Shown: positions 9,422 to 62,580 of the stretch, piece after piece
How the letters are laid out: each line of letters starts with the position of its first letter
Numbering within the stretch: position 1 is the first letter of the stretch
Origin: Octopus bimaculoides
Taxonomy: Eukaryota
Reading direction: 5' to 3'
DNA length: 64,000 bases
Assembly (NCBI RefSeq): GCF_001194135.2
Contig: NC_068990.1
Span: forward strand, 17,543,825 to 17,607,824
The notes under the pieces: generated by a model
What the model was told of the DNA's origin: nothing
The model's database searches: none
Seen by the model: only the letters and a program-made list of their open reading frames with translations
Position numbers and translations under genes: made by a program

Positions 9422-12400
9422 ACTCTTTAGCTAACTGGTGTTCTATCGAGGTGGAGTATATATGCAACAGAATCGGCCTTATGAGCCTGTGACTTGGGAA
9501 GGAACTTTTTGATTTTCTAGGGTGCCAGTTCCATGTAAAAAGCACTCTGTACACTCTGTAAAGTAGTTGGCATTAGGAAGGGCATCTGGCCAAAATGGAC
9601 AATTGGAGCCTGGTGCAATTCTACGGCTTGCCAGCTCCTGCCAAACCATTCAACCCATACTGGCAGGGAAAACAGATGTTAATTGATGGTGGTGATGTTA
9701 GGTTGTATGTGTATTCGTGTTCATTTTAACAAACATATAATGTAGGGTAGTCATGTATATTCTTTGTCCCGCCATCATACTTCAGCCCCCAACACCTGGA
9801 TTAAAACTACTTCTCCATCTCAAACATTCACGTTGTTTAGTGGAAGAAGAGCTTTTCCTGCCTTTTTTTCTTGCTGCAAGTTACTTGGCAGAGCTACTCA
9901 TGATTAACATAAAAAACACCAGAAGACACTGTAAAGTGGTTGGTGTTCAGGAAGGCATCTGGCTATAGAAACATGCCAAGACTGACATTGAAGCTTGACA
10001 CAGCTCTGTTGGATCCTGCTGAGCCAACCAACCCATACCAGCATGGGAAATGATGTTTGTGGGTTTTTATTTTACTGAAGAAAACAAAGTCTGTGTAAGT
10101 TGTGGGCCTAACATGGTTATCATCATCCATTGATTACAACTTGTGGTGGAGTTGGACATGGTGATGGTATGCTGCATGTCCTATTTCATCATCAATGACC
10201 TGAGGTCATCAACAGTCATACCAGCAGTCATTAATCAGAGACTTGACCATGGTTTTAGAAGGATGCTCATGGTTCACCTTTCCCAAAGGTTGGTTCCCAG
10301 ATGATTTGGCTAACAGGCAACTTTGGGTGTCACAAAGAAGCTGTAGCCAGTCATCTTGCTATCTTGTCAACTGGAGAAGATCAGAAGACAGCAAGATGAT
10401 TGGTTGCCATCTGCATCTGTTTGAAGCTGAAGGTCATTTGAAATATCAACAAACTTAGCCATGGATGTAGTGAGAATCGAAATTTAACATCTATAAAGAA
10501 GCGTTGTCTTGATTGCTGCCAGGAAAAGTTGTCTGAAGAGGTTCAGGTATTCCACATAATAATGAGCACTTACCTGATGTCTCTCTACACCTTCATCTCT
10601 CTTTCTGAGGTACAAGACTTAAGAAACTTAGTTGATTTGAGTATCTTTAATCATCTTTAGCATACATACTGTGTAGTTCGTCTTAGTATTGTGGTGTGAC
10701 AGAAAAGGTAACATGCTGCTGGGTTAACACTTGCAAGCATTCTAAGCAGCAGACCCTTTATATCCTTCCTGAGGCTCTGGCTCCTTGAAACAAATTTCAT
10801 TTTAAAGAGATCATGTTGGAATTAATACTTTCTATCATAATCCCATTTAGGAATCGGTTGCATTTAACCTCAGATGTTCATCCTAGCTGTCAACCATATT
10901 GGTCTTCCTACTCTAGGTGAGTTGGCAAAAGTCATGGCTGGTGCTCCTCATTTACTGAAGGGCTTACAAAGAAAAGAAAGAAACCTCTGATAATGTGGTG
11001 TGTGTGTTTGTATTGTGTTATCGTAGGCAAGTGTCCTGAGCTGATTAAAGTACAGATTTGATAGATGGAAAATGAGTGAAGCTCATCATCATTTAACATC
11101 CGTCTTTCATGCTGGCTTGGATTGGATCTGATGGGTTACAGGACTGCATCATGGTATTACATTCACTTTGACATGGTTGTTTACCAGCTGATATCTTACA
11201 GTATCATCTATGTTATATTTTGATGGCGTTTCTATGGTTAGATGCTCTTCCTAAAGCCAACCATGTCTGTCTCTCTGTCTTCACTTAATAGTTGCAGATG
11301 CATGTTACCACCACAGAAATGGTCTCATTCATTTTCAATCTTTCAAGGAAATGTGTGGCCCTGAGGAAATATCTGTTGGAAACTGAGGATTGCTGACAGG
11401 GAGAGCATTCATTATGCCATAGAAAATCTGCCTCAATGATCTCTTTGATTGCAGTTCTTATTAACTGAAGCTAAACAACTAATATATCAGGCTTTAGATA
11501 TTTTATTACTCTTCCAAAGTCTAGATTAGTTTGAAAATTGAAATAGTTAAGGCAGATTACATGCTAGAAGTATAACTGTGAAAGTATTAAACTTTTTTTT
11601 TCCCATATTGTTCTAAATCAATGGCTGTGAATTTCATCAGTATATATTTCCCATACATAACTGGTGCTCTTGAAGAAAAACATTAATACAACACATTATC
11701 ATTGCTTTCCTCCTCTCTCATTGTTTTACTTTTATATTGTGCTCTATCTAGCTATTGGGTTAATAGTAAAACTGCAGCCCCTCTTTAAAAAAAGCAATAA
11801 ACAAATCCTGTACAAAATGTGGTTACTCTACCATTAACACTAGCATTTAAACCAGCCATGACTGACTTAAATAGTTTAAGGCACAAATTGTCCAGATCTG
11901 GCCTATCACACATACCCTACAATGTCATTCAAGAAATAAACAATTATATCACTGAAATCTCAATGTTACAAGATAATGCATGATTAACTCAAAACAATGT
12001 ACATAAGCTTTACATTCGACAGGGTAATCTGAATGCGAAAAGTTTAAGACAGTTTTGTGATTTGAAGATCTGGTAACCATTTCTAGAAGGTTAAACAAAT
12101 CTGAGGAACTTACATTCATTATACATTCTTAGTTGTAACAATTTCATTTCACAGATTGTTAATAAACCCTTTTAAATTACACTATGAAAGTTTTGCTATT
12201 TCCTTTGGAAATTTATGCAGCTATATTCAAAATTTAAAAGCTGCTCAGAATAAATTTTGGTCTTAAATATTAATGTTTTTTTTAAATAATACCTTGCATT
12301 GGTCATCTTGACCTTATCTTTCCAGTATTAAGTATCGTTGAAGTATTGAGCCAGTTTTATTGACCTCCTCACCTTATTTTTAAGTACCAGCCAATAGTGG

Positions 12401-13619
12401 AAGAACTTTAAGACTGACTGTCCTCTCTCCTATGAAATGCATCAAGCTACTTGACCCTTTTGTTCTTTTGTTACCGTATTTTTGTTGAAATGTCTTTCAA
12501 TTGCTAATCTCTTGTTGATGGTCACATGTCCCATAGATGATTACAGTGTTAGTCAAACTGACGAGTTTCCTGAACAATGATCATAAAAGTGTAATTTGTT
12601 CAGTGAAGTAGGAAGAAATCCAAATTATTTTTTCATGCTTAGGATTTTATTCCCTACTACCATCCCAATGATAGTGGCATTTCCACTCTTTTCGAGGCCT
12701 CAAGATAGGGGAATGGCCTGTAAATATATAGGTGAACTGCCAATATTCTGTTGAAACACTCGACTTTTAGTTCAATTAATTTCAAAAATAATGAATTTAG
12801 TAAAATAACTTTCATTATTAACTGCATTTGGAAGACAAATTATTGACTGGTGATTGAAACAACACAATTTTTGTTGGATTATAATTTAGATTACTTAAGA
12901 CAAAATTTGTATTGTAGAACCAGGCCAGTCTTGATTGAAGTGGTATCAAAAATATAGTATTTTACAAAGAAAAAATTCTGTTTGAATATGAGATTATGGA
13001 TCAGAACTTAATAAATTATTCTTGCTTTCTGATATTGGCATGAGGTCAGATTTTGTAGATGTCTCCTTAACACTTCTTATATATATGTCTTCAGTGTGTC
13101 TCAAGATTCCACTCAATCTTTTACTCCCTTCTTGTCCCTTCTGCCTCAGATCCCCTCTTACACAACCCACCCTACCACATTTTCAACTCTACCTCCCCCT
13201 CTTTCAATCCTCTTATAAATCTCTTATTACTCTTGCCTGTTCTATCAGGTGTAGTTGCCATTTGCATGTTATGAGGCAATCTTCCTTAGTGCTGGAGCCA
13301 TGGAAAAAGGCGGGGGCAGTACACCCTGTGAAGTAGTTGTTAGAAAAGACATCCAGCTGTTAAAGCAGACATTGGAGCCTGGGACATTCCTCTGACATGC
13401 CATATTCTGTCTAACCATCCAACTCATTCCAGCATGGATGACAGACATTTATTGATAATGTGAATTTAAAGAGACCCTAGTAGTTGGCAAGTCCTTCATT
13501 AAGAAAAAATTAAAGGGAAAGTTAGCACTGCTTGGTTTTGGACAGGAAATTAATTATGAAATCTGAATTTTATTGTTGTCAGTGTTGTTGCTAATACTTT
13601 TTTTCTTCATCTTTTCTAG

Positions 13620-16831: not shown

Positions 16832-17306
16832 NNNNNNNNNNNNNNNNNNNNNNNNNNNNNNNNNNNNNNNNNNNNNNNNNNNNNNNNNNNNNNNNNNNNN
16901 NNNNNNNNNNNNNNNNNNNNNNNNNNNNNNNNNNNNNNNNNNNNNNNNNNNNNNNNNNNNNNNNNNNNNNNNNNNNNNNNNNNNNNNNNNNNNNNNNNNN
17001 NNNNNNNNNNNNNNNNNNNNNNNNNNNNNNNNNNNNNNNNNNNNNNNNNNNNNNNNNNNNNNNNNNNNNNNNNNNNNNNNNNNNNNNNNNNNNNNNNNNN
17101 NNNNNNNNNNNNNNNNNNNNNNNNNNNNNNNNNNNNNNNNNNNNNNNNNNNNNNNNNNNNNNNNNNNNNNNNNNNNNNNNNNNNNNNNNNNNNNNNNNNN
17201 NNNNNNNNNNNNNNNNNNNNNNNNNNNNNNNNNNNNNNNNNNNNNNNNNNNNNNNNNNNNNNNNNNNNNNNNNNNNNNNNNNNNNNNNNNNNNNNNNNNN
17301 NNNNNN

Positions 17307-17358
17307 TGAAGTATATGTCTTGAGAGTATGGAGTCTGCTGGTTCAGTTATTAGGAAAG
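17307..17358 (+). CDS. RIF1: RIF1 coding exon 6, 3' part only (EVYVLRVWSLLVQLLGK); start hidden in N gap
   Basis: Matches human ETYVLKLWPLFVKLLGR; donor GTAAAT 17359; gap 16832-17306. Confidence 0.9.
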
Positions 17359-20478: not shown

Positions 20479-22205
20479 GTATGTATTAAAGAACTTCCAT
20501 TTTAATCATTTGTTACAAATTCTGTTACATAAACCAGTTTATAAAATTTAATAATTGTTTAACTTCTTGGTTCCATGAGTCAGATGGCATACATTAAGGC
20601 AGAGTTTCTGTGGTCAGATGCCCTTCCTGTCACCAACTCTGTTTCCAAGCAGGGTAAGATCTCCCATGGCCTCTCTTTTCATGAAAGATTAGAAATGAAC
20701 AACATAGCTCGTATGATTGTGCTGCTCATTTTCCAACCATCATATAATGTCAGAACTGGCATGCACACACACACACACACACAAAGTGGACTTCCTCCAT
20801 CAAATACACTCACGACCCTGGGGCTGTAGTAGAGAAACTGTCCCCAAGACCACACGGTTTGGAAGCAAGATTGTCACCCACACAGCAACATCTGCACCTA
20901 TTTAAAATTTGTTTTCAGCAGTGTTGCCAGACATTAGATTTTATATAGTCACATATCCAACACCAGGTCTGTTGGGCTGAGTCTCAGGTACCAAGATATG
21001 TAAATGGTTAGAGTATTGTACAATCATTCAGTTAATTCTTGAAATTCTTATAAAATCAGTAATGGGGCCGTCTGTCTGAATCTGCTGTACTTTACAGCCT
21101 CACTTCTCTGAAGCCTCAATATTCAACTTCACTTCTACTCATGTTTTTGTTTTTCCCTTCCATGTCAGCATCAGCACAATGTCATTCACTCACATCACAT
21201 GTCCATTGCTAATCTGTGTCCTCCTGCACACATCAACTTTTGTTTCTAATGTATTGTCACTAAGCTTCCACATGTATCAAATTTCCTGCAATGTGTCTAA
21301 CATGGCAGATTTGCCCCCAAAATGCTTGAAAATTGAATGGATAGCAGTAGGAAAGGCATTCAGTTAACGTAAGTGAACACAATTGCTCCAAACACATCTA
21401 CTCTCCGCTAATGCAATCATGAAAAAAATGGTGGGGGGTGGTCATAGTTACCTATGTTACTATAAGTAACTTATAGCAAATATTTAGAAACATTATTTTT
21501 AGGGTGAAGGTGGCAAGCAGGCAGAACCCATGTCAGACAAAATGCTTTGTGGCATTATTTTTGATTCTTCACACTCTGAGTTCAAATTTCATTGAGGTTG
21601 GCTTTGCTGTTCATCATCTTGGGGTTGATGTCATTAACTGGTCCCCACTTCTTCTAAAGTTGTTGATCGTGTGCCAAAATCTGGAACAATTGTTATAAAT
21701 TTAAACATTTGTTTTACATTTAACTTTTTGCCCAATTTCTGACAGCCATCTATTTGATATTAGACACAGATGCCAATGTGGCTTTGTGGTTAAGAAGTTT
21801 GCTTCCCAACCACGTGGTTGAGGGTTCAGTCCTGCTGCATAGCATCTTGAGTAAGTGTTTTTTACCATAACTCTTGGCGAATGAAAGCTTTGTGAGTCAA
21901 CAGGGTAAATAAAAACTGAAAGAAGCCCTTTGATGTGTGTGCGTCTCCTTGTCTTGATATTTTAGTAGTTTCTATACAAAGGGTGTCTGTTTCCAATCAT
22001 CTGTGTAAACATGTCTGGTAATGGGGGAACACATTACCTTGCTTGGAAACAAGTGATGGTTGACTGCAAGAAGGGCATTTTGCGTCTGACTCATGCAAAT
22101 ATGGAAAAGAGGACATGAAAATGATGCTGATCTCTCATATTGATACCTAAATATTTAATTCATACCTCTATTTGCATTAATATATATTTTCTCTTTTCCC
22201 TGCAG

Positions 22206-39920: not shown

Positions 39921-42308
39921 ATAGCTACAAATAAATCAAATCAAGAAAATTATGGCAAGTCCACTAAGAGGGTTACATTTGCCAAAGACACGAAACTCCC
40001 TGAACTGTCACCTGCAATTGGCTGTGAAAAAGTCACTGAATATACTGAAAAGCCCCAAAACATTGGAGTGAAATTAGAACCGTACACTAAAATACAACCA
40101 GCGTCAAGCCCTGCTAAAACCAAGCTCACCAAAAACAAAGAACCAGTCAGTATCAAACCTGGAAAAACGTCAAAGAATACTTCAGAAGATCAGCCAACAT
40201 CATTACAGAATTGGCTTTGCACTAGTCAGTCTTTAAAGGTTCCTTCTGTTCCTCTTCTCATGGAGCCTCATGTAACTTCAATTGTTGCTCAAGACTCTCT
40301 TACAAATGACAGTTTGTCTGCTGAACAAAGCCATCCTTCAGACAGACCAGTGCAAAGTAACTTATTTGTTGAAGAAACTCAGTCCCCAATCAAGATGTGC
40401 TCTGACCGTCAGTCTACAGGTGAATCTGTCTTGGAAACACCTGTCAAAACTTTGACAAGAGAAGTTAACACTAGCGTCAATATCAGGCGATTGTCCTTTG
40501 ATCTTGCAGAGAACGCTGATTCTAACAGTGCCATTAGCTCTTCTGGTGGTTTTGAATTGAAAGAGGCAAGTGAGGTTGAACTTGCCATGAAGGAGGAGCA
40601 ATTGGAAGTAATTCCTAAGCAAAATAATTCCAAAGATATTTCAAATAAAAAGACTTCTGGAAAGGATATTTGCCAAAGTAAATTATTTCTACCAAGCGAA
40701 AATGAGAGTATTCCTGACTCTGAAAGTGTGATACCTAATCAAAATATGGCTGCTATATCACAGAAACGAAAATTAGATTCAGATGAGAGAATATCAGAAA
40801 TTAAAAAACCAAATTTGGAAGAAAATAATTCTGTTAATATTCAGAATGATAATCAGCATGTTGCTTGTGACAAGGACAAAATAACTGATCACCATGGTGG
40901 TACTATTAGTCCTTTCAAACAGCTTCACAAATCAGATGTTTTACCAGTGTCTAAACCTATTATAGGATCTCGTAAAAGGAAACCTTTGAAGGTTACTAAA
41001 ATTGTCCAAAATACTGATCGTCGAATATCACCTGTTAGGACACGCTCATGCGTAAAGACTCTTCGTGCACGGAAAAAAGCGACTCAAAACTCAGAAAATC
41101 CTGCAAATAAATCCACTTCCAGAAAGAAAATTGGAAAAGAAATCAAAGCTCGAAAAGCTCTGAATGTGTCTGAAAAAAACAAGAACCCGACACACAGACG
41201 AAATAATAATGTAAAGAAATTAACATCTGTTGAGAAAAATGCAAAAGACAGCATGAAAATTTCTAAAACTCAAGATAAAACCTATTGTGAAACTATTACT
41301 GCTGTGGTCAATGGTGATTCCATTAATAGTTGTCCTTTTGGAGAAACTGAAAGGTTCTCTTGTGAGCAGGAAATGACAAATGTTGTTGAGCAGGAAAAGA
41401 ATGTTGTATCAGATGTGGTTGAAGAGGAGGTTGAATCAGTTAAATCAGATGTTGTTGAGCCTGAATCTGAGCATAAAAGAGACAGCTTTGACTCAGATTT
41501 AAGTGATGAAGTTGAATTAAATTTAGCTGGGCTGAAAGAAGAGAGAGAGGAGTTGGATTTAGTTCAAGAAGAAAAGAGAAAGATCAAACAAGAAAACCAG
41601 GAAGTTGAGCCAGATTTGACTGAGGAAGAGGAAATAAAAATAGACAATGTTGTGGAGGATGCACAGTCAGTAACAGTGAAGTCTAATGCTTCAGAAATCA
41701 CGATGGCTGAAGGTTCAAGCCTAGCAGTAATGTCTGAAAAGTTTGAGGGAGATGATGATAGTTGTGGGGATCTGAAGCTGGATTCAGAAAATGAGACGCA
41801 AAGTGATGCCAGTCCATCAATGACTGTTTGTGAAACTGAGAGCTCAGTGCTGCAGCCAGCAGCTATTGTGGATTCTGAAGTAAATGAGAACTTTGTGGAC
41901 CAAGAATCAGAGAATAAACCTGTTTTATCCAAAGTTGATACACCAAAGAAATCACTTCGGTTGCGTTCTGGTAATCGAGGATTTCCGTCCAAGTTCTCTG
42001 ATAGTTTTGTTTATGGTATTAAGGTTTCAAACTGTTCTATGTCTGCTGCCAAAAAAAGTGCAACTCCAAAGTCTGTGATGAAAACTTCTCCAATTCATGG
42101 GAACACAACTGTTGAGGGTGATGACTACACCACTGCTACAACAGACATTTTTTCCTCTGAAAAGCAGTTCTTATCCTCCTCACTCTGTGATACCCCTGAA
42201 AGTTGTCCTTCTGCTACCTGTTCCCCTTCATCTGTTTATTCACCAACAACTGGTATTCTAAAGAAGAGACTACAGAATAATGGTGAAACACCATCACCAC
42301 CAAATAAG
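39921..42308 (+). CDS. RIF1: RIF1 coding exon 27, 2,388-nt disordered-region exon ending YSPTTGILKKRLQNNGETPSPPNK
   Basis: TTTTCAG acceptor, GTAAGT donor 42309; 796 codons, S/E/K-rich; GILK PP1 motif 42252-42263. Confidence 0.95.
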
Positions 42309-43456: not shown

Positions 43457-43585
43457 CAACGGAGAGTGTCGTTTGCTGATCCAATATTTGAAGAGAAAAC
43501 TTTACCATCCCCCATGTCACAAAAGAGGCGGCTCACACCTTGCAGTTCCAGATCATCACGCCGTAGTCTTCTTTCCAATTACAAG
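43457..43585 (+). CDS. RIF1: RIF1 coding exon 28 (QRRVSFADPIFEEK...SNYK), RVxF PP1 motif
   Basis: TTGCAG acceptor, GTTTGT donor; RRVSFADPI as in human. Confidence 0.95.
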
Positions 43586-46520: not shown

Positions 46521-47584
46521 GTCCCATGACTTCCTGGGTCTACCTCATCCACAGGTTCCCTCCACCGTTAGTGTGACACTTCTTCACACAGCTGTCCTCA
46601 ACCATACCAGTGCAGTCTCTTTTGCACACCACATCTCATCTCTCTTATGCCCAACTTTTCTCTCGAGACACTCACACTGTCATACATACACATCCAGCAA
46701 AACATACTGGTTCCATTTCTTACAAGCCTATGCATGTCCTCAGCAGTCACAGCATATCTTTCACTGCCATATAGCATGGCTGTTCACTCACAAGCATTAT
46801 AGTCTGCTTTTCACCCTGATCAAGAGGCCCTTTGCTACTATCACAAGTAGGAGACCTCTGAATTTTGTCCAGCCTATTCTTATTTCAATATAGAAATCAG
46901 AAAACAAAGCATTTTGTGATTTATATGAAAGCTAGCCCGGTTAGTATTACTTTGTGCACCTAAGAACAGTTGATTAAAAGACTAGTGTGTATCATCAAGT
47001 AACGTATACAAACATGTCTGGCTGTAATATTTTGTTTCAGTCTTCTGTGTTAAAATGCACAGGGCTTGCTCAATGCCATTGACAGATCACCAGACCTATT
47101 TGCAACAACCACTCATATTGCTGTCTACAACCACCTGCCAGTTTTCCCTCCAACTCAAGGCGAAACATTATCTATATGAAGACACTCTTACCACCTGCCT
47201 ATTGACTGTGTAGGATTTTCTGCTGCACTTTGTATTACTAACTTTTGATGAATTCCAACTTTGTAGCTGCAGACTGGTTGTGTGCTTAAAATGTTTGCTT
47301 CTCAACCATATGGTTTCAGGTTTTTGTTAATTTGTTTCCATGATAATGAATTCTTTCTATGGGCACAGGGCATGAATTTTTTTGGTGGGGGTGGTTGTTA
47401 GTAGAGTTTATCATAGAGGATATTTAAGTTCCTGTATAGTGGGACCTTGGATGTCCTCTACTGCAATCTTGGGCCAACTAAAGCCTTGGGAATGGATTTT
47501 GGGGATGGAAATGAAAAGAAACTTGTGCTTACATGAGTGTNNNNNNNNNNATGAAAAGAAACTTGTGCTTACATGAGTGTGTGT

Positions 47585-47623
<39 letters not shown>

Positions 47624-47855
47624 TGTCACCTTGCTTTGACATCATGGGATAATTATAAATACCCTCATACAAGTGGAGTTCCTCATTTCCAATCTTCCGT
47701 GAAAACTTTTCTGACCATGGGGCAATATGACCTTGCTTGGGAATAGGTGAGGGTTAGTGACAAGTATGTCGTAGTAAACCTGCCTTAATGAATTCATCTA
47801 ACCCATGCAAGCTTGAGAAAATGGATGTTAAAATAATGTTGGTGATACATACATT

Positions 47856-47861
<6 letters not shown>

Positions 47862-47926
<65 letters not shown>
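47862..47926. repeat. (TA)n microsatellite just upstream of the CII exon acceptor
   Basis: About 32 TA units. Other microsatellites: (CA)n about 34852-34895, (TA)/(TACA) about 44180-44250, (TC)n about 17512-17537, (TA)n about 51918-51950. Confidence 0.95.
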
Positions 47927-47929
<3 letters not shown>

Positions 47930-47958
47930 AATGTTTTATTTTATTTTTTTCTCATTAG

Positions 47959-48317
47959 GTTTCGTGGTCTCAGTCAACTTCTCAAAGCAAGAAAACTCCA
48001 TACTGTTGGTGATTTAGCTTCACTTTCTGAATATGATATCCATAATTTACCTGTGAGATCTCCTAAAGTACCTCATGTGAAGAAAATACTGGCTAACTTT
48101 AAGAAACAGCTCGATGCCAAAAAGGACAAGACTTCTTGTAGTCTCTTGAATACATCTGCTGGTGAAATAATGGCTGCTGCAATGGCAGCTGCCTCCACTA
48201 ATGTTGTCTCAGACTTGAAGAATGATCCACCAACAGGAAATTGCAATTCAGTTGATGGCAAGAATGTCCCAAGCAATGAAATGAAATCATTGGAACTTGA
48301 GAATCCAGTTGTCCAAG
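47959..48317 (+). CDS. RIF1: RIF1 coding exon 30, CII core (FRGLSQLLKARKLHTVGDLASL...RSPKVPHVKK...VVQ)
   Basis: CATTAG acceptor, GTAAGG donor 48318; matches human ARGLGQLIRAKNIKTIGDLSTL...IRSPKVSNVKK. Confidence 0.96.
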
Positions 48318-49384
48318 GTAAGGTTACATAAATATTCAAAAACTTTGTTTACAAGCTGTTATCAGTTGTAATGCAACCTCTGCCGTTTGTACCTAAAATG
48401 ATTATGTTGCTTTGCTCTGCTGTAATCTCTCCTTCAACTCTCAGCATCTAGCTGTAATTACTGCAGAATGGTACATCTAAACTGCAGGAGACAATGTAAA
48501 GTATGTGTTATTACCTTGTACATTTCGAAAGTGACAGTCTACAATACACAAACAGTCTTCAAGTTTTGCCTTGACAATTCATTATAAGTAAATGTATTTT
48601 CTACATACTCAGGCATGGCCTTGCAGTTAAGAATTTCGTTTCCTAGCACGTTTTCAAGTTCAGTCCCATTGCATGGCACCTTAGACAGTTGTCTTCCATA
48701 GTTCTGGGCCTTGTATGTGTTAATTGAGGACAGAAACTGAAAGCAGTATCATTATACCAGTGGTCGTTTCCAGCCGTCTGTGAAATGGTCTGGCCAAGGG
48801 AGAATAATACTTTAGTTGGGAAAAGGGGTTGGTGACAGGAAGAGCATCAAGCTGTAGAACATCAACCTCTACACATTATCTGACCATACAGGTATGAAAA
48901 AATAGATGTTAAATTATGATGCTGATGAGATATGTTTCCATACAAACATCATCATCAAACAGTCTCCTTTATTTCTAATCTTCTATTTTTACATGTCTTG
49001 TGATGTGACACATTATCCAACTGAGAAACGAGTCAAAGTTCATCACGGAAAAGACATCTGGCCTTAGAAAATCTGCCTCAAAAAATTCAAGCTAACCCAT
49101 ACAAACATGGGAAAGTGGACATTAAAACAGCAATAATGATGGTATAATACCAACAATATATTTCTACTGTAACTATCATCAGCAGACAATGTAAATAGAC
49201 TTCTTCATTGCACTGTGACAATGAAGTCTTGGTGTGTTGTTGGATGTATATTCAATTGGTTAACATAATAGTGTTGATTTAGTGAAGCTTAGGATATCTT
49301 TTAGTGATGTTTAGTTTCTAATGTCTCATAATATAGTAAACACATTGAAGTGTCACTCATGTATTGTATTTTCTTTTTCTTTAG

Positions 49385-49468
49385 CTCTCTCCTCTGATGC
49401 AGAAGAGAAGACCATAGCTACTCCAGCTGCACAAACCATTGTAGATAGGGAATCTTCTTTGCATGAAA
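49385..49468 (+). CDS. RIF1: RIF1 coding exon 31 (LSSDAEEKTIATPAAQTIVDRESSLHE), 84 nt, phase 1 to 1
   Basis: Strong polypyrimidine TTTTTAG acceptor, GTAAGT donor 49469, frame fits both neighbours. Confidence 0.8.
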
Positions 49469-49574
49469 GTAAGTAATGTTTTGTGTTTGTCTGTGTGTCT
49501 CTGTTCTATGAATGTTTCTTTGATATATTGGTTTGCACTAACACCTGAATTCTGTTTTCTTTATTTTAAATCAG

Positions 49575-49844
49575 CCACATCCACTGAGGCAGAAAAGAAA
49601 GCCACAGCTCCATCTGCTGAGGCACAAGAGAAAACCACAGAGCTATCTGCTGGGGCACAAGAGAAAACCACAGAGCCATCTGCTGGGACACAAGAGAAAA
49701 CCACAGAGCCATCTGCTGGGGCACAAGAGAAAACCACAGAGCCATCTGCTGGGGCACAAGATAAAACCACAGCTCCATCTACTGGTGCACAAGAGAAAAC
49801 CACAGAGCCATCTGCTGGGGCACAAGAGAAAACCACAGAGCCAT
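49575..49844 (+). CDS. RIF1: RIF1 coding exon 32 (partial), 11-aa tandem-repeat exon running into gap 49845-50780
   Basis: AAATCAG acceptor in phase 1; open frame TSTEAEKKATAP(SAGAQEKTTEP)n. The 3' end is not visible. Confidence 0.72.
49580..49844 (+). repeat. Coding minisatellite, 33-bp unit TCTGCTGGGGCACAAGAGAAAACCACAGAGCCA, 8 visible copies (first degenerate)
   Basis: Units start at 49580, 49613, 49646, 49679, 49712, 49745, 49778 and 49811; array truncated by N gap. Confidence 0.97.
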
Positions 49845-50780
49845 NNNNNNNNNNNNNNNNNNNNNNNNNNNNNNNNNNNNNNNNNNNNNNNNNNNNNNNN
49901 NNNNNNNNNNNNNNNNNNNNNNNNNNNNNNNNNNNNNNNNNNNNNNNNNNNNNNNNNNNNNNNNNNNNNNNNNNNNNNNNNNNNNNNNNNNNNNNNNNNN
50001 NNNNNNNNNNNNNNNNNNNNNNNNNNNNNNNNNNNNNNNNNNNNNNNNNNNNNNNNNNNNNNNNNNNNNNNNNNNNNNNNNNNNNNNNNNNNNNNNNNNN
50101 NNNNNNNNNNNNNNNNNNNNNNNNNNNNNNNNNNNNNNNNNNNNNNNNNNNNNNNNNNNNNNNNNNNNNNNNNNNNNNNNNNNNNNNNNNNNNNNNNNNN
50201 NNNNNNNNNNNNNNNNNNNNNNNNNNNNNNNNNNNNNNNNNNNNNNNNNNNNNNNNNNNNNNNNNNNNNNNNNNNNNNNNNNNNNNNNNNNNNNNNNNNN
50301 NNNNNNNNNNNNNNNNNNNNNNNNNNNNNNNNNNNNNNNNNNNNNNNNNNNNNNNNNNNNNNNNNNNNNNNNNNNNNNNNNNNNNNNNNNNNNNNNNNNN
50401 NNNNNNNNNNNNNNNNNNNNNNNNNNNNNNNNNNNNNNNNNNNNNNNNNNNNNNNNNNNNNNNNNNNNNNNNNNNNNNNNNNNNNNNNNNNNNNNNNNNN
50501 NNNNNNNNNNNNNNNNNNNNNNNNNNNNNNNNNNNNNNNNNNNNNNNNNNNNNNNNNNNNNNNNNNNNNNNNNNNNNNNNNNNNNNNNNNNNNNNNNNNN
50601 NNNNNNNNNNNNNNNNNNNNNNNNNNNNNNNNNNNNNNNNNNNNNNNNNNNNNNNNNNNNNNNNNNNNNNNNNNNNNNNNNNNNNNNNNNNNNNNNNNNN
50701 NNNNNNNNNNNNNNNNNNNNNNNNNNNNNNNNNNNNNNNNNNNNNNNNNNNNNNNNNNNNNNNNNNNNNNNNNNNNNNNN
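49845..50780. other. Assembly gap (936 N) inside RIF1
   Basis: N run. Other gaps: 5820-5908, 16832-17306, 47541-47550, 51362-51371, 51951-52237, 60459-60945. Confidence 0.99.
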
Positions 50781-50821
50781 ATTTCTAAGTCTCTCTAAAG
50801 GAGACTACGGCAGCGGTACTG

Positions 50822-51310
50822 GATATTAATAGTTATTGCCAAGCTAACATGGCTGTCCAGAAAAGTAGGACGAATGCTGCCGTTGATTAGCTCCAAGAAG
50901 CCATTGCTTCTAGCTAGCTATGTGACACACGAACCTGTGTCCATTATAACCGTTGAACAGGGGAGGTCAGCCGCTTAGAGAGACTTAGAAATATTAATAT
51001 TTCTATTTTTGAAAACCAGTGGATGTATTCCACTGAATTTAGGTAAATAATCCTTTGAACAGACGGTCAGTAGCGACGCCTGCTCGGTTTGGCTGCTCTA
51101 CATTGATAAAGGGCAAATACCCTGAAACTAGTGTATAGATGCCAGACCAGCAAGGGGAAGCGGCTGACCTCCCCTGTTCGAAGGTTATAATGGACACAGG
51201 TTCATGTGTCATAGCTAGCTAGCGGCGATGGCCTCTTGGAGCTGATCAACGGCAGCATTCGTCCAATTTTTCTGGGCAACCATATTAGCTTGGCGATAAC
51301 TATTAATATC
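50822..51310. repeat. Long inverted repeat (foldback): arms 50822-50975 and 51159-51310
   Basis: Reverse complement of the right arm aligns along the whole left arm with scattered mismatches; 183-bp spacer. Confidence 0.93.
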
Positions 51311-51404
51311 TCAAGAAGCAATTAACTATATTAATTTTTAGGGATTTGGGAATTGAAAATTNNNNNNNNNNTATGTATATAATTATTTTTAAATTTTTTA
51401 ATAG

Positions 51405-51821
51405 TGCCAGAACTTGACTCACCACATTCTTCAATAAAGTTAGACATCGAAGAAGCTAGTGTATTGCAGAATGAGAAAGAAGTTTCTGCCACCACCACCG
51501 TCCACCAAAGAGCACCAACTCCAGATTCCGAATCCCAAGTAACACTACCTCCAAGCTGTGAAGTTACCCAGGGAAAGCCTTGTGGTCAGCAAGATGTTTC
51601 TCCAGCTCTTACAAGTACTTCAGTCCCTGTTATAGTCAACCCTGAAGCTTCTAGTACACCTGTAAAATCTCCCAAAGTTTGTACAGATGAAAATGCAGAA
51701 AATGCTTCACTTGGTGCATCTGTGGAAGCTTCATGCTCTCCAATAAAACCAGTTTACTTGGAAACCAATCACAGTGAAGATGAGCAAGATGAAGATATGT
51801 TTGAAGATGAAGATGAGAAAG
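51405..51821 (+). CDS. RIF1: RIF1 coding exon 33 (PELDSPHSS...EDEQDEDMFEDEDEK), 417 nt, phase 1 to 1
   Basis: TTTTAATAG acceptor, GTAATT donor 51822; long open S/T/P/E-rich frame that fits the last exon. Confidence 0.82.
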
Positions 51822-51905: not shown

Positions 51906-51950
<45 letters not shown>

Positions 51951-52277
51951 NNNNNNNNNNNNNNNNNNNNNNNNNNNNNNNNNNNNNNNNNNNNNNNNNN
52001 NNNNNNNNNNNNNNNNNNNNNNNNNNNNNNNNNNNNNNNNNNNNNNNNNNNNNNNNNNNNNNNNNNNNNNNNNNNNNNNNNNNNNNNNNNNNNNNNNNNN
52101 NNNNNNNNNNNNNNNNNNNNNNNNNNNNNNNNNNNNNNNNNNNNNNNNNNNNNNNNNNNNNNNNNNNNNNNNNNNNNNNNNNNNNNNNNNNNNNNNNNNN
52201 NNNNNNNNNNNNNNNNNNNNNNNNNNNNNNNNNNNNNATCATACTTTATCTCCTGTCTTTCTCATATCCATTTAATA

Positions 52278-53223: not shown

Positions 53224-53657
53224 ATGTCAGTACTGTTGAGGATGATGTTAACTCTATCTTGGAACATTCCGGTGCTCTGCTTCAAGAAGTCCATAAACTT
53301 TCTTTATCAGTTCAACAACTAGAGAAAACATCCAACTCTTTAAAATTTCTCCGAGATGATTTCACTGCTGATGAACATTGCCAAGGGACAGAGGGTTTCG
53401 ATGTCAGCCACCTTCTGCCATTACAGTCAGACAAAAATAACAGATTACAGCAGTCTAAACTGCTCAGAGACATTTCTGTACAGAAAGATGTAGAACTCTT
53501 ACCAACACTAAAGCTTTTGTTAGAAAGATTCACTTCCAGAGAAATCAGGCAACTAAATTATTCTGAAATCCTCCAAGCCCATTCACTTTTGCAGCATCTT
53601 TTAAAGTCTACTATGGAAGCTGCCATTCCAGATACATGTAATCAACAGAAAGACTGA
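53224..53657 (+). CDS. RIF1: RIF1 last coding exon with CIII (LLPTLKLLLERFTSREIRQLNYSEILQAHSLLQHLLKSTME...), stop TGA
   Basis: TTTTCACAG acceptor; aligns by eye to human LLAQISALALQLDSEDLHNYSGSQLFEMHEKL. Confidence 0.88.
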
Positions 53658-61269: not shown

Positions 61270-61960
61270 ATTGGAGGTTAACCATTCTCTCATGCATTTT
61301 TGCAAACGATAAACGTAATCTGCTGGATCGAAATTTCGGTTAAGTACAGTTGTATTTGTGACCATTTGTCTAGGTAGAATAAGAGGGGCGCCATAAAGTA
61401 ATTCCGCTTGTGAAAAAAACCTAAGTCTTCCTTCACAACTGATCGAAGACCCAATAAAACAATTGGTGATTCGGAACAAGCGTGTAGAGATGCTTTCAAT
61501 TGACAGCAAAAACCATCATCCCGTTAGACCTAGGGTGGTATGCAGTGGTACGTATTCGCTGCGAACCCAGCAAGTTTGAAAGTGCAGCAGATTCGATTCA
61601 AATTGTCGACCTCCATCAGTAGTTATGATGAGGGTAGCTCCAAAACGCAAAATCCACCCGGCTATAAGGGCCTTTGCAATAGTAAGAGGTAAAATGTCCT
61701 GTCCGGCTATCCTTGATAGGTATAGTTTCAAACCATCTAGAAAAACGATCTTGAGCTGGTAGCAAAGGATCCACAATATCAATGTGAATGTGTCCGGAGT
61801 AGCAAAAGTACCCGAAGGTGCCTTTAGCTGTCTGGCACGATGTGCAAGTGCGGGCCCAATTTCGAAAATCTTTTTGCATACTGCGCCTAACAAAACGATT
61901 TGAAATTAATTTCGTTGTTGCCGTAATACCAGGATGAGATAAATTATGAAGAACCGAAAA
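61270..61960 (-). mobile_element. Gypsy/Ty3 integrase remnant (frameshifted)
   Basis: LHNLSHPGITATTKLISNRF...WARTCTSCQ (HHCC), HIHIDIVDPL, DRFSRWFETIPIKD, WILRFGA...ITTDGGRQFES, PIVLLGLRSVVKEDL, AELLYGAPL spread over three frames. Confidence 0.92.
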
Positions 61961-62580
61961 AAGAAAAAAACCCGTTCGTCTGACTCTTATGAAAATAAGG
62001 TCTGGAAAAACCGGTAGAAACATCACACCAAATAGAAGAATTTGTAGAGTGTAGTGGTAGTAGGCGGAAGTCTAAAGAAAGTGAGTACAGGTGTACATAA
62101 ACTAAGATATGTAGCTTGTAATACTTGACCAAGTAGTGTATGTTGAACAAAATGAGAGAAAATGCTGTACGCGATTAAGCCATAAAAACTTGTCTATATT
62201 CAACGCGACCATGACGAGATCTTGTAGATGAAGTTGCTGGCCGGACACAAGGCGAAAAAGCATGGAGAAATGTCTTTTCTGGGTGCAGGAGAGATATAGA
62301 AAGATACATACTGGTCATTTGTAAGTGGTGAGGAAAAAAGTTCGCTCGGTAAACGATGTGCAAAATTGAACGTCAACAATGGTCTTGCGTCATCTTGCGG
62401 TGGTGGAAACAGTGGTAATGGATATATGCTGTGTTGAAGAAACTGTTCATGCGCTGGTTGGTAGTTTGATGCAGAGTAGAGGGTTCAATAATTTTAAACG
62501 GCCAAACGGCAAAATGAATTTCCAAGGTTTAGCAGGACCACGGTGAGTGGCGATGCGTCTGGAAACATATCGAGATGGTA

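Follow-up and report, generated by a model that had tools for sequence, protein, structure and literature searches.

A 33-bp minisatellite in the C-terminal linker of Octopus bimaculoides RIF1, probably a lineage-specific coding repeat

Is the 33-bp tandem array at positions 49575-49844 of the window (the whole stretch of 64,000 nucleotides that was analysed) translated as part of a protein, and if it is, does the added peptide change what that protein does? An earlier note had read the array as a coding minisatellite in the C-terminal domain of RIF1 that might set the distance between two subdomains, CII and CIII. The answer depends on how the array is joined to its host gene, on whether its codons resemble those of that gene, and on what a second cephalopod carries at the same place.

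The array and its host gene

Tandem Repeats Finder, run on the window, placed the repeat at 49584-49844 with a period of 33, 7.9 copies, 91% matches, 0% indels and a score of 424. The consensus 33-mer is matched six times at three or fewer mismatches, with an expectation of 0 from 100 shuffles, and a BLAST search of the window with the array as query gave no further array copies. Read from 49577, the eight 11-residue units are TSTEAEKKATA, PSAEAQEKTTE, LSAGAQEKTTE, PSAGTQEKTTE, PSAGAQEKTTE, PSAGAQDKTTA, PSTGAQEKTTE and PSAGAQEKTTE, followed by P. Unit 1 is clearly diverged (9 of 33 bases), and the eight contain no stop and no indel, the period of 33 being 3 x 11. Tandem Repeats Finder and the frame reading agree with the earlier description of a 33-bp minisatellite of eight tandem 11-residue units with few substitutions. 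That description also had the array running into a 936-nt gap, and the array does break mid-unit at 49844 against exactly 936 N. With the contig ending inside a unit, it is reasonable to infer that the copy number is above the assembled eight.

The repeat translation was searched against 1.84 billion representative proteins in a full HMMER scan. One protein (P0007, 2512 aa) matched at 99% identity, over residues 2132-2219. It is XP_014790628.1, named 'telomere-associated protein RIF1 [Octopus bimaculoides]' by NCBI; the repeat peptide is already present in a public RefSeq protein. Other high phmmer scores came from mucin-like proteins rich in Thr, Pro and Glu, because these share the 11-residue period and have a similar composition (P0004, a VWD-domain protein, has GGGSQEVTTQP units). 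They appear to be secreted, P0004 having cysteine-rich domains of VWD and EGF type, whereas RIF1 is nuclear. These top matches were rejected as homologues, having no homology to RIF1 outside the repeat.

XP_014790628.1 was placed on the window from exact k-mer seeds, with the junctions found by brute force. The 35 coding exons of its CDS all fall within 8596-53657, with GT-AG junctions except the one that crosses the gap, and the repeat exon is coding exon 32. The gene carries the N-terminal Rif1_N HEAT/ARM repeat domain, Pfam PF12231 matching exons at 13.6-19.4 kb with E=1.1e-38 and 133.6 bits (cut-off 23). The Rif1_N match and the NCBI name concur in the assignment to RIF1 made from the sequence at the outset. 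Just 5 nt separate one coding exon of this part, 17312-17358, from a 475-N gap before it (16832-17306), and near 16832-17358 both the assembly and the RefSeq protein probably lack some of a HEAT-repeat exon.

Metazoan RIF1 consists of N-terminal HEAT repeats, a long disordered region and a C-terminal part with SILK/RVxF motifs plus CI-CIII, and the SILK/RVxF arrangement is a known one (PMC8583789). The large octopus exon 39921-42308 ends ...SPTTGILKKRLQ, with a GILK motif at its end, and the exon after it, 43457-43585, reads QRRVSFADPIFEEK and carries RRVSFADPI. SILK and RVxF motifs, putative docking sites for PP1, are thereby recognizable where the disordered region meets the C-terminal part. 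Octopus RIF1 thus has in common with other metazoan RIF1 the Rif1_N domain, GILK followed by RRVSFADPI, a conserved CII-like segment and the name given by NCBI. It would differ in having a repeat between CII and CIII, where the literature searched describes none, and the cephalopod interval there is long. The features of this part of the window are as follows.

47959-48317, plus strand: coding exon 30, the CII-like conserved segment (FRGLSQLLKARKLHTVGDLASLSEYDIHNLPVRSPKV...), with a phase-1 donor; exact mapping of XP_014790628.1
49385-49468, plus strand: coding exon 31, 84 nt, phase 1-1, ALSSDAEEKTIATPAAQTIVDRESSLHE; opens with a diverged repeat unit of 33 bp
49469-49574, plus strand: intron between exon 31 and the repeat exon, 106 nt; GT...AG, reproducing the RefSeq protein exactly
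49575-49844, plus strand: repeat exon, assembled part; 8.1 units of 33 bp, (PSAGAQEKTTE)n, residues 2132-2219 of XP_014790628.1
49845-50780, unstranded: scaffold gap of 936 N, concealing the rest of the array, the donor of the exon and part of an intron if the exon is real
50781-51361, unstranded: foldback (long inverted-repeat) element, intronic, directly after the gap; arms of ~155 nt, ~90% complementary
50833-50864, plus strand: mini-exon of the RefSeq model, 32 nt, DYCQANMAVQK, inside the left arm of the foldback
51405-51821, plus strand: next coding exon, phase 1-1, PELDSPHSS...EDEDEK; a poorly conserved linker, acidic and rich in Ser, Thr and Pro
53224-53657, plus strand: last coding exon with the stop; 'CIII' by position only

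The boundaries of exon 31 are those first read from the letters, and the mapping of XP_014790628.1 confirmed them. The CII-like exon is 67% identical over 69 aa to its counterpart in a second cephalopod, described below as L001, and 54% identical to an unrelated, non-octopod metagenome contig (L003); it gave no PDB or Pfam match. We take it to be the equivalent of vertebrate CII from the motif LP[VI]RSPKV. The exon that begins at 51405 (TGCCAGAACTTGAC...) is 31% identical to its L001 counterpart at 20520-20950, and the last exon also had no Pfam or PDB match. The placement between CII and CIII given in the earlier note thus stands as a placement between the CII-like exon and the C-terminal exons.

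Simple repeats adjoin several assembly gaps in the window. Long (TA)n microsatellites lie at 47860-47935, beside the acceptor of the CII exon, and at 51908-51950, beside a 287-N gap (51951-52237). Downstream of RIF1, at 61616-62026 on the minus strand, lies a retrotransposon remnant, a partial ORF with a match to Pfam Integrase_H2C2 (E=1.4e-11).

Splice sites, codon usage and the RefSeq model

On its 5' side the repeat frame is continuous with the flanking exon; its 3' side lies in the gap. An AG at 49573-74, following a pyrimidine tract, sets the exon start at 49575. Joining the phase-1 donor at 49468 to this acceptor yields the junction codon a|cc and puts the array in the PSAGAQEKTTE frame, in keeping with the phase-1 acceptor first proposed to open it.

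Splice sites were scored with position weight matrices (PWM) trained on the other sites of the gene (29 other acceptors), the AG and GT dinucleotides in the gene serving as decoys. The acceptor at 49575 scores 9.38 bits, a level reached by only 0.37% of 2403 decoy AGs; the real acceptors of the gene, scored leave-one-out, have a mean of 8.18 bits (sd 3.77). For exon 31 the acceptor scores 10.61 bits, which 0.21% of decoy AGs equal or exceed, and the donor, AAA|gtaagt, scores 10.69 bits, reached by none of 2475 decoy GTs.

Codon log-odds were taken from the CDS of the gene against its introns, leaving out the region under test. The consensus unit scores 0.516 bits per codon in the predicted frame and -0.05 and -0.30 in the other two, a statistic of only 11 independent codons under a model trained on this one gene. 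That value is reached in their best frame by 0.9% of intronic 33-mers, and by 17.6% of true in-frame CDS 33-mers. The assembled repeat exon scores 0.53 bits per codon and is CDS-like in the predicted frame only. Exon 31 scores 0.42 in frame, against -0.43 and -0.84 off-frame.

The main alternative is an intronic minisatellite or pseudo-exon, never or rarely spliced in, whose inclusion in the RefSeq protein would be an ab initio by-product at the gap; we regard this as possible but doubtful. A minisatellite of that kind would be expected to have no usable splice sites and no coding-like frame. Here a strong acceptor stands in a compatible phase exactly at the 5' edge of the array, CDS-like codon usage is confined to the predicted frame, and the period is divisible by three with zero indels, all of which speak against an intronic minisatellite.

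Other features of the array suit a pseudo-exon. A second plus-strand frame (PHLLGHKRKPQS...) and one minus-strand frame are open as well, so that an open frame by itself is weak evidence of coding. Among units 2-8 there are six non-synonymous differences and one synonymous; being mostly amino-acid-changing, they give no sign of purifying selection on the peptide. The ratio is the pattern that neutrality predicts, and the differences look neutral, on changes too few for a firm signal.

The way in which the RefSeq model leaves the repeat also favours the pseudo-exon, since it is artificial. The model exits at 49839 by a GC donor, ACAGA|GCCAT, that scores -6.1 bits, and crosses the 936-N gap with a GC-AG intron; each repeat unit contains the donor sequence GA|GCCAT. 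It then enters the mini-exon, whose acceptor (PWM -5.6) is below all 29 real acceptors and is exceeded by 67% of decoys, and whose donor scores 3.2 bits. The surrounding foldback element, of which no second copy was found within the window, folds as DNA at -183.9 kcal/mol (z = -23.7). The mini-exon is most likely a gap-bridging artefact, and with a GC donor this implausible and a mini-exon inside a foldback element, we regard the 3' repeat exit of XP_014790628.1 as an artefact too, a patch over the gap. Within the assembled units there is no credible donor. The only GT, after position 49784 in a GGT variant, is in phase and would restore a Val codon G|TG; we rejected it as the exit, because it scores 2.5 bits and the array continues beyond it. 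It can be argued that, with a clean in-frame junction available from 49468 to 51405, a predictor would hardly have settled on sites of -6 bits (donor) and -5.6 bits (acceptor), unless alignment evidence had led it into the repeat.

Repeat-bearing matches in the protein databases are limited to the predicted RefSeq model; no transcript-derived protein with the repeat was found there, a further point for the pseudo-exon. The spliced query from CII to the end of the protein, with and without the repeat, gave zero protein matches in a word-index search. We treated these negatives as uninformative, because the search also missed the window's own RefSeq protein and the CII ORF of L001. A protein search with the 753-aa exon returned three genomic ORFs only and zero transcripts. 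Exact look-up of window ORFs gave no other assembly of Octopus bimaculoides, a 23-mer of the repeat unit had zero matches in JGI metagenomes, and a scan of the same metagenomes with the CII peptide found one contig, which is non-octopod. On balance the RefSeq model, the splice-site scores and the codon usage lend support to the earlier claim that the array is coding, at the strength that such predictions allow.

Comparison with a second cephalopod and origin of the unit

The second locus, L001, is a 376-kb contig from an ENA assembly of a decapodiform-like (squid-like) cephalopod. In blocks, the RIF1 encoded there shows 32-74% identity to that of octopus, and the locus includes the RVSF and CII exons together with a homologue of the 51405 exon. 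Between the CII exon and that homologue L001 contains no tandem repeat, no match to exon 31 and no match to the unit. Octopus and L001 alike have a CII exon ending ...g|gt, followed by an exon that begins tg, and direct splicing gives the same Val codon, G|TG (48317 to 51405 in the window, 18029 to 20520 in L001). Both exon 31 and the repeat exon would therefore have been added, as phase 1-1 exons, on the octopus branch, and the comparison suggests that the direct junction from CII to the next exon is ancestral, the two exons having been inserted later. Skipping both keeps the frame. The repeat-free L001 locus, the preserved frame and the common G|TG codon again count in favour of a pseudo-exon.

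Exon 31 bears on the same question from the other side. The repeat unit recurs in diverged form as its first 33 bp (LSSDAEEKTIA), and the acceptor regions of the two exons can be aligned; none of 1000 dinucleotide shuffles reached the score of the local alignment between exon 31 and the repeat. This paralogy and the aligned acceptors suggest that a well-formed exon, through duplication of a part of it, gave rise to the array. Descent of the unit from an exon flanked by excellent splice sites argues against the pseudo-exon.

The reading that we favour, with moderate confidence, is that of a real coding cassette exon, near-neutral in effect. On this view Octopus bimaculoides RIF1 has a lineage-specific phase-1 cassette exon, of which the array would form the 5' part. 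A unit of 11 codons, found also at the start of exon 31, would have been copied with its acceptor region to a place ~190 bp downstream, where slippage during replication or unequal exchange presumably multiplied it. With a unit of 3 x 11 bases, gain or loss of copies would always be in frame. The product would be a presumably disordered insert of at least 88 residues, rich in Thr, Glu, Lys, Pro, Ala and Gln. It would lie in the long, poorly conserved stretch that separates the conserved CII-like segment from the C-terminal exon, where a disordered linker would tolerate changes in copy number. Most likely it would make a flexible tether modestly longer, with near-neutral effect, and would bring no new activity.

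Functional readings and significance

Vertebrate RIF1 has a short CII-CIII linker, and the proposal that the repeat tunes the CII-CIII distance began from that premise. It did not hold in cephalopods. From CII to the last exon, octopus and L001 both have about 200-230 poorly conserved residues without counting any repeat, which undercuts the idea of a repeat that transforms a short linker.

A repeat between CII and CIII of RIF1 was not described in the literature searched, in which the account of CI-CIII has none (PMC8583789). A search for RIF1 together with octopus returned nothing relevant, and no paper was found that mentions this repeat. The array shares with coding minisatellites of the VNTR type in disordered regions a unit that is a multiple of three, head-to-tail copies that are nearly identical, edge units that are more diverged, a low-complexity composition (Thr, Glu, Lys, Pro and Ala) and a poorly conserved linker as its setting. 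It differs from coding VNTRs in being known from one assembly that is broken at the array, with its 3' end in the gap.

L001 has a tandem repeat of its own elsewhere in RIF1. At 11959-12910 of that contig (residues ~655-970 of its protein, P0003) a 66-bp repeat of ~14 copies at 98% identity encodes a 22-residue unit, KVESSNLTRPFDNENIAVDKSN, that is single-copy in a relative (P0002) and absent from octopus. It lies in a large exon, inside one continuous ORF, so its coding status is independent of splicing. The two repeats are alike as recent, near-perfect, in-frame expansions in disordered parts of RIF1. They differ in unit, lineage and position, that of L001 falling between the PSKFSDSF block and the SILK motif. 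The independent expansion in the large exon of L001 shows that disordered regions of RIF1 tolerate in-frame expansions.

A bolder reading takes the octopus array as an expressed, length-polymorphic VNTR in the tether from the DNA-binding CII segment to the C-terminal module, with allele length measurably affecting RIF1 function and cephalopod RIF1 as a site of recurrent expansion. The recurrence would rest on two lineages, two positions and two unrelated units. We consider this reading improbable.

Marginally less probable again is an adaptive role, in which the repeat would be a tunable spacer setting the CII-CIII distance or a platform for phosphorylation or O-GlcNAc modification. If translated, the array would contribute 16 or more Thr and 8 or more Ser to the interval from the conserved CII-like segment to the C-terminal exon, and its interior units are nearly identical, as expected of an array that can change in length. 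A spacer role fits poorly with an interval that is already long and poorly conserved in two cephalopods without the repeat, with substitutions that mostly change amino acids, and with the lack of the repeat from the other cephalopod examined, L001. A phosphorylation platform is without motif support: the unit, read by eye, has no S/T-P site and no CK2-type S/T-x-x-D/E site, and the one TQ is in a variant unit.

An assembly artefact, in which a repeat contig foreign to RIF1 was collapsed or misplaced here, is very improbable. The contig does break within the array, and past the gap the sequence opens in another repeat (the foldback), but the eight units stand on the N-free contig 47551-49844 with exon 31 and the CII exon, and their unit is paralogous to exon 31, only 190 bp upstream.

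We return, then, to the coding cassette exon. The array is probably a lineage-specific coding minisatellite in a disordered linker, near-neutral in effect. Because coding repeats in disordered linkers are a common and familiar thing, our understanding of RIF1 is unchanged by it. The practical value is in annotation, XP_014790628.1 being wrong around the gap. If translated, the array would be a species- or genus-specific, probably variable insert in the C-terminal tether of octopus RIF1: a minor curiosity for RIF1 biology and a possible marker for population genetics.
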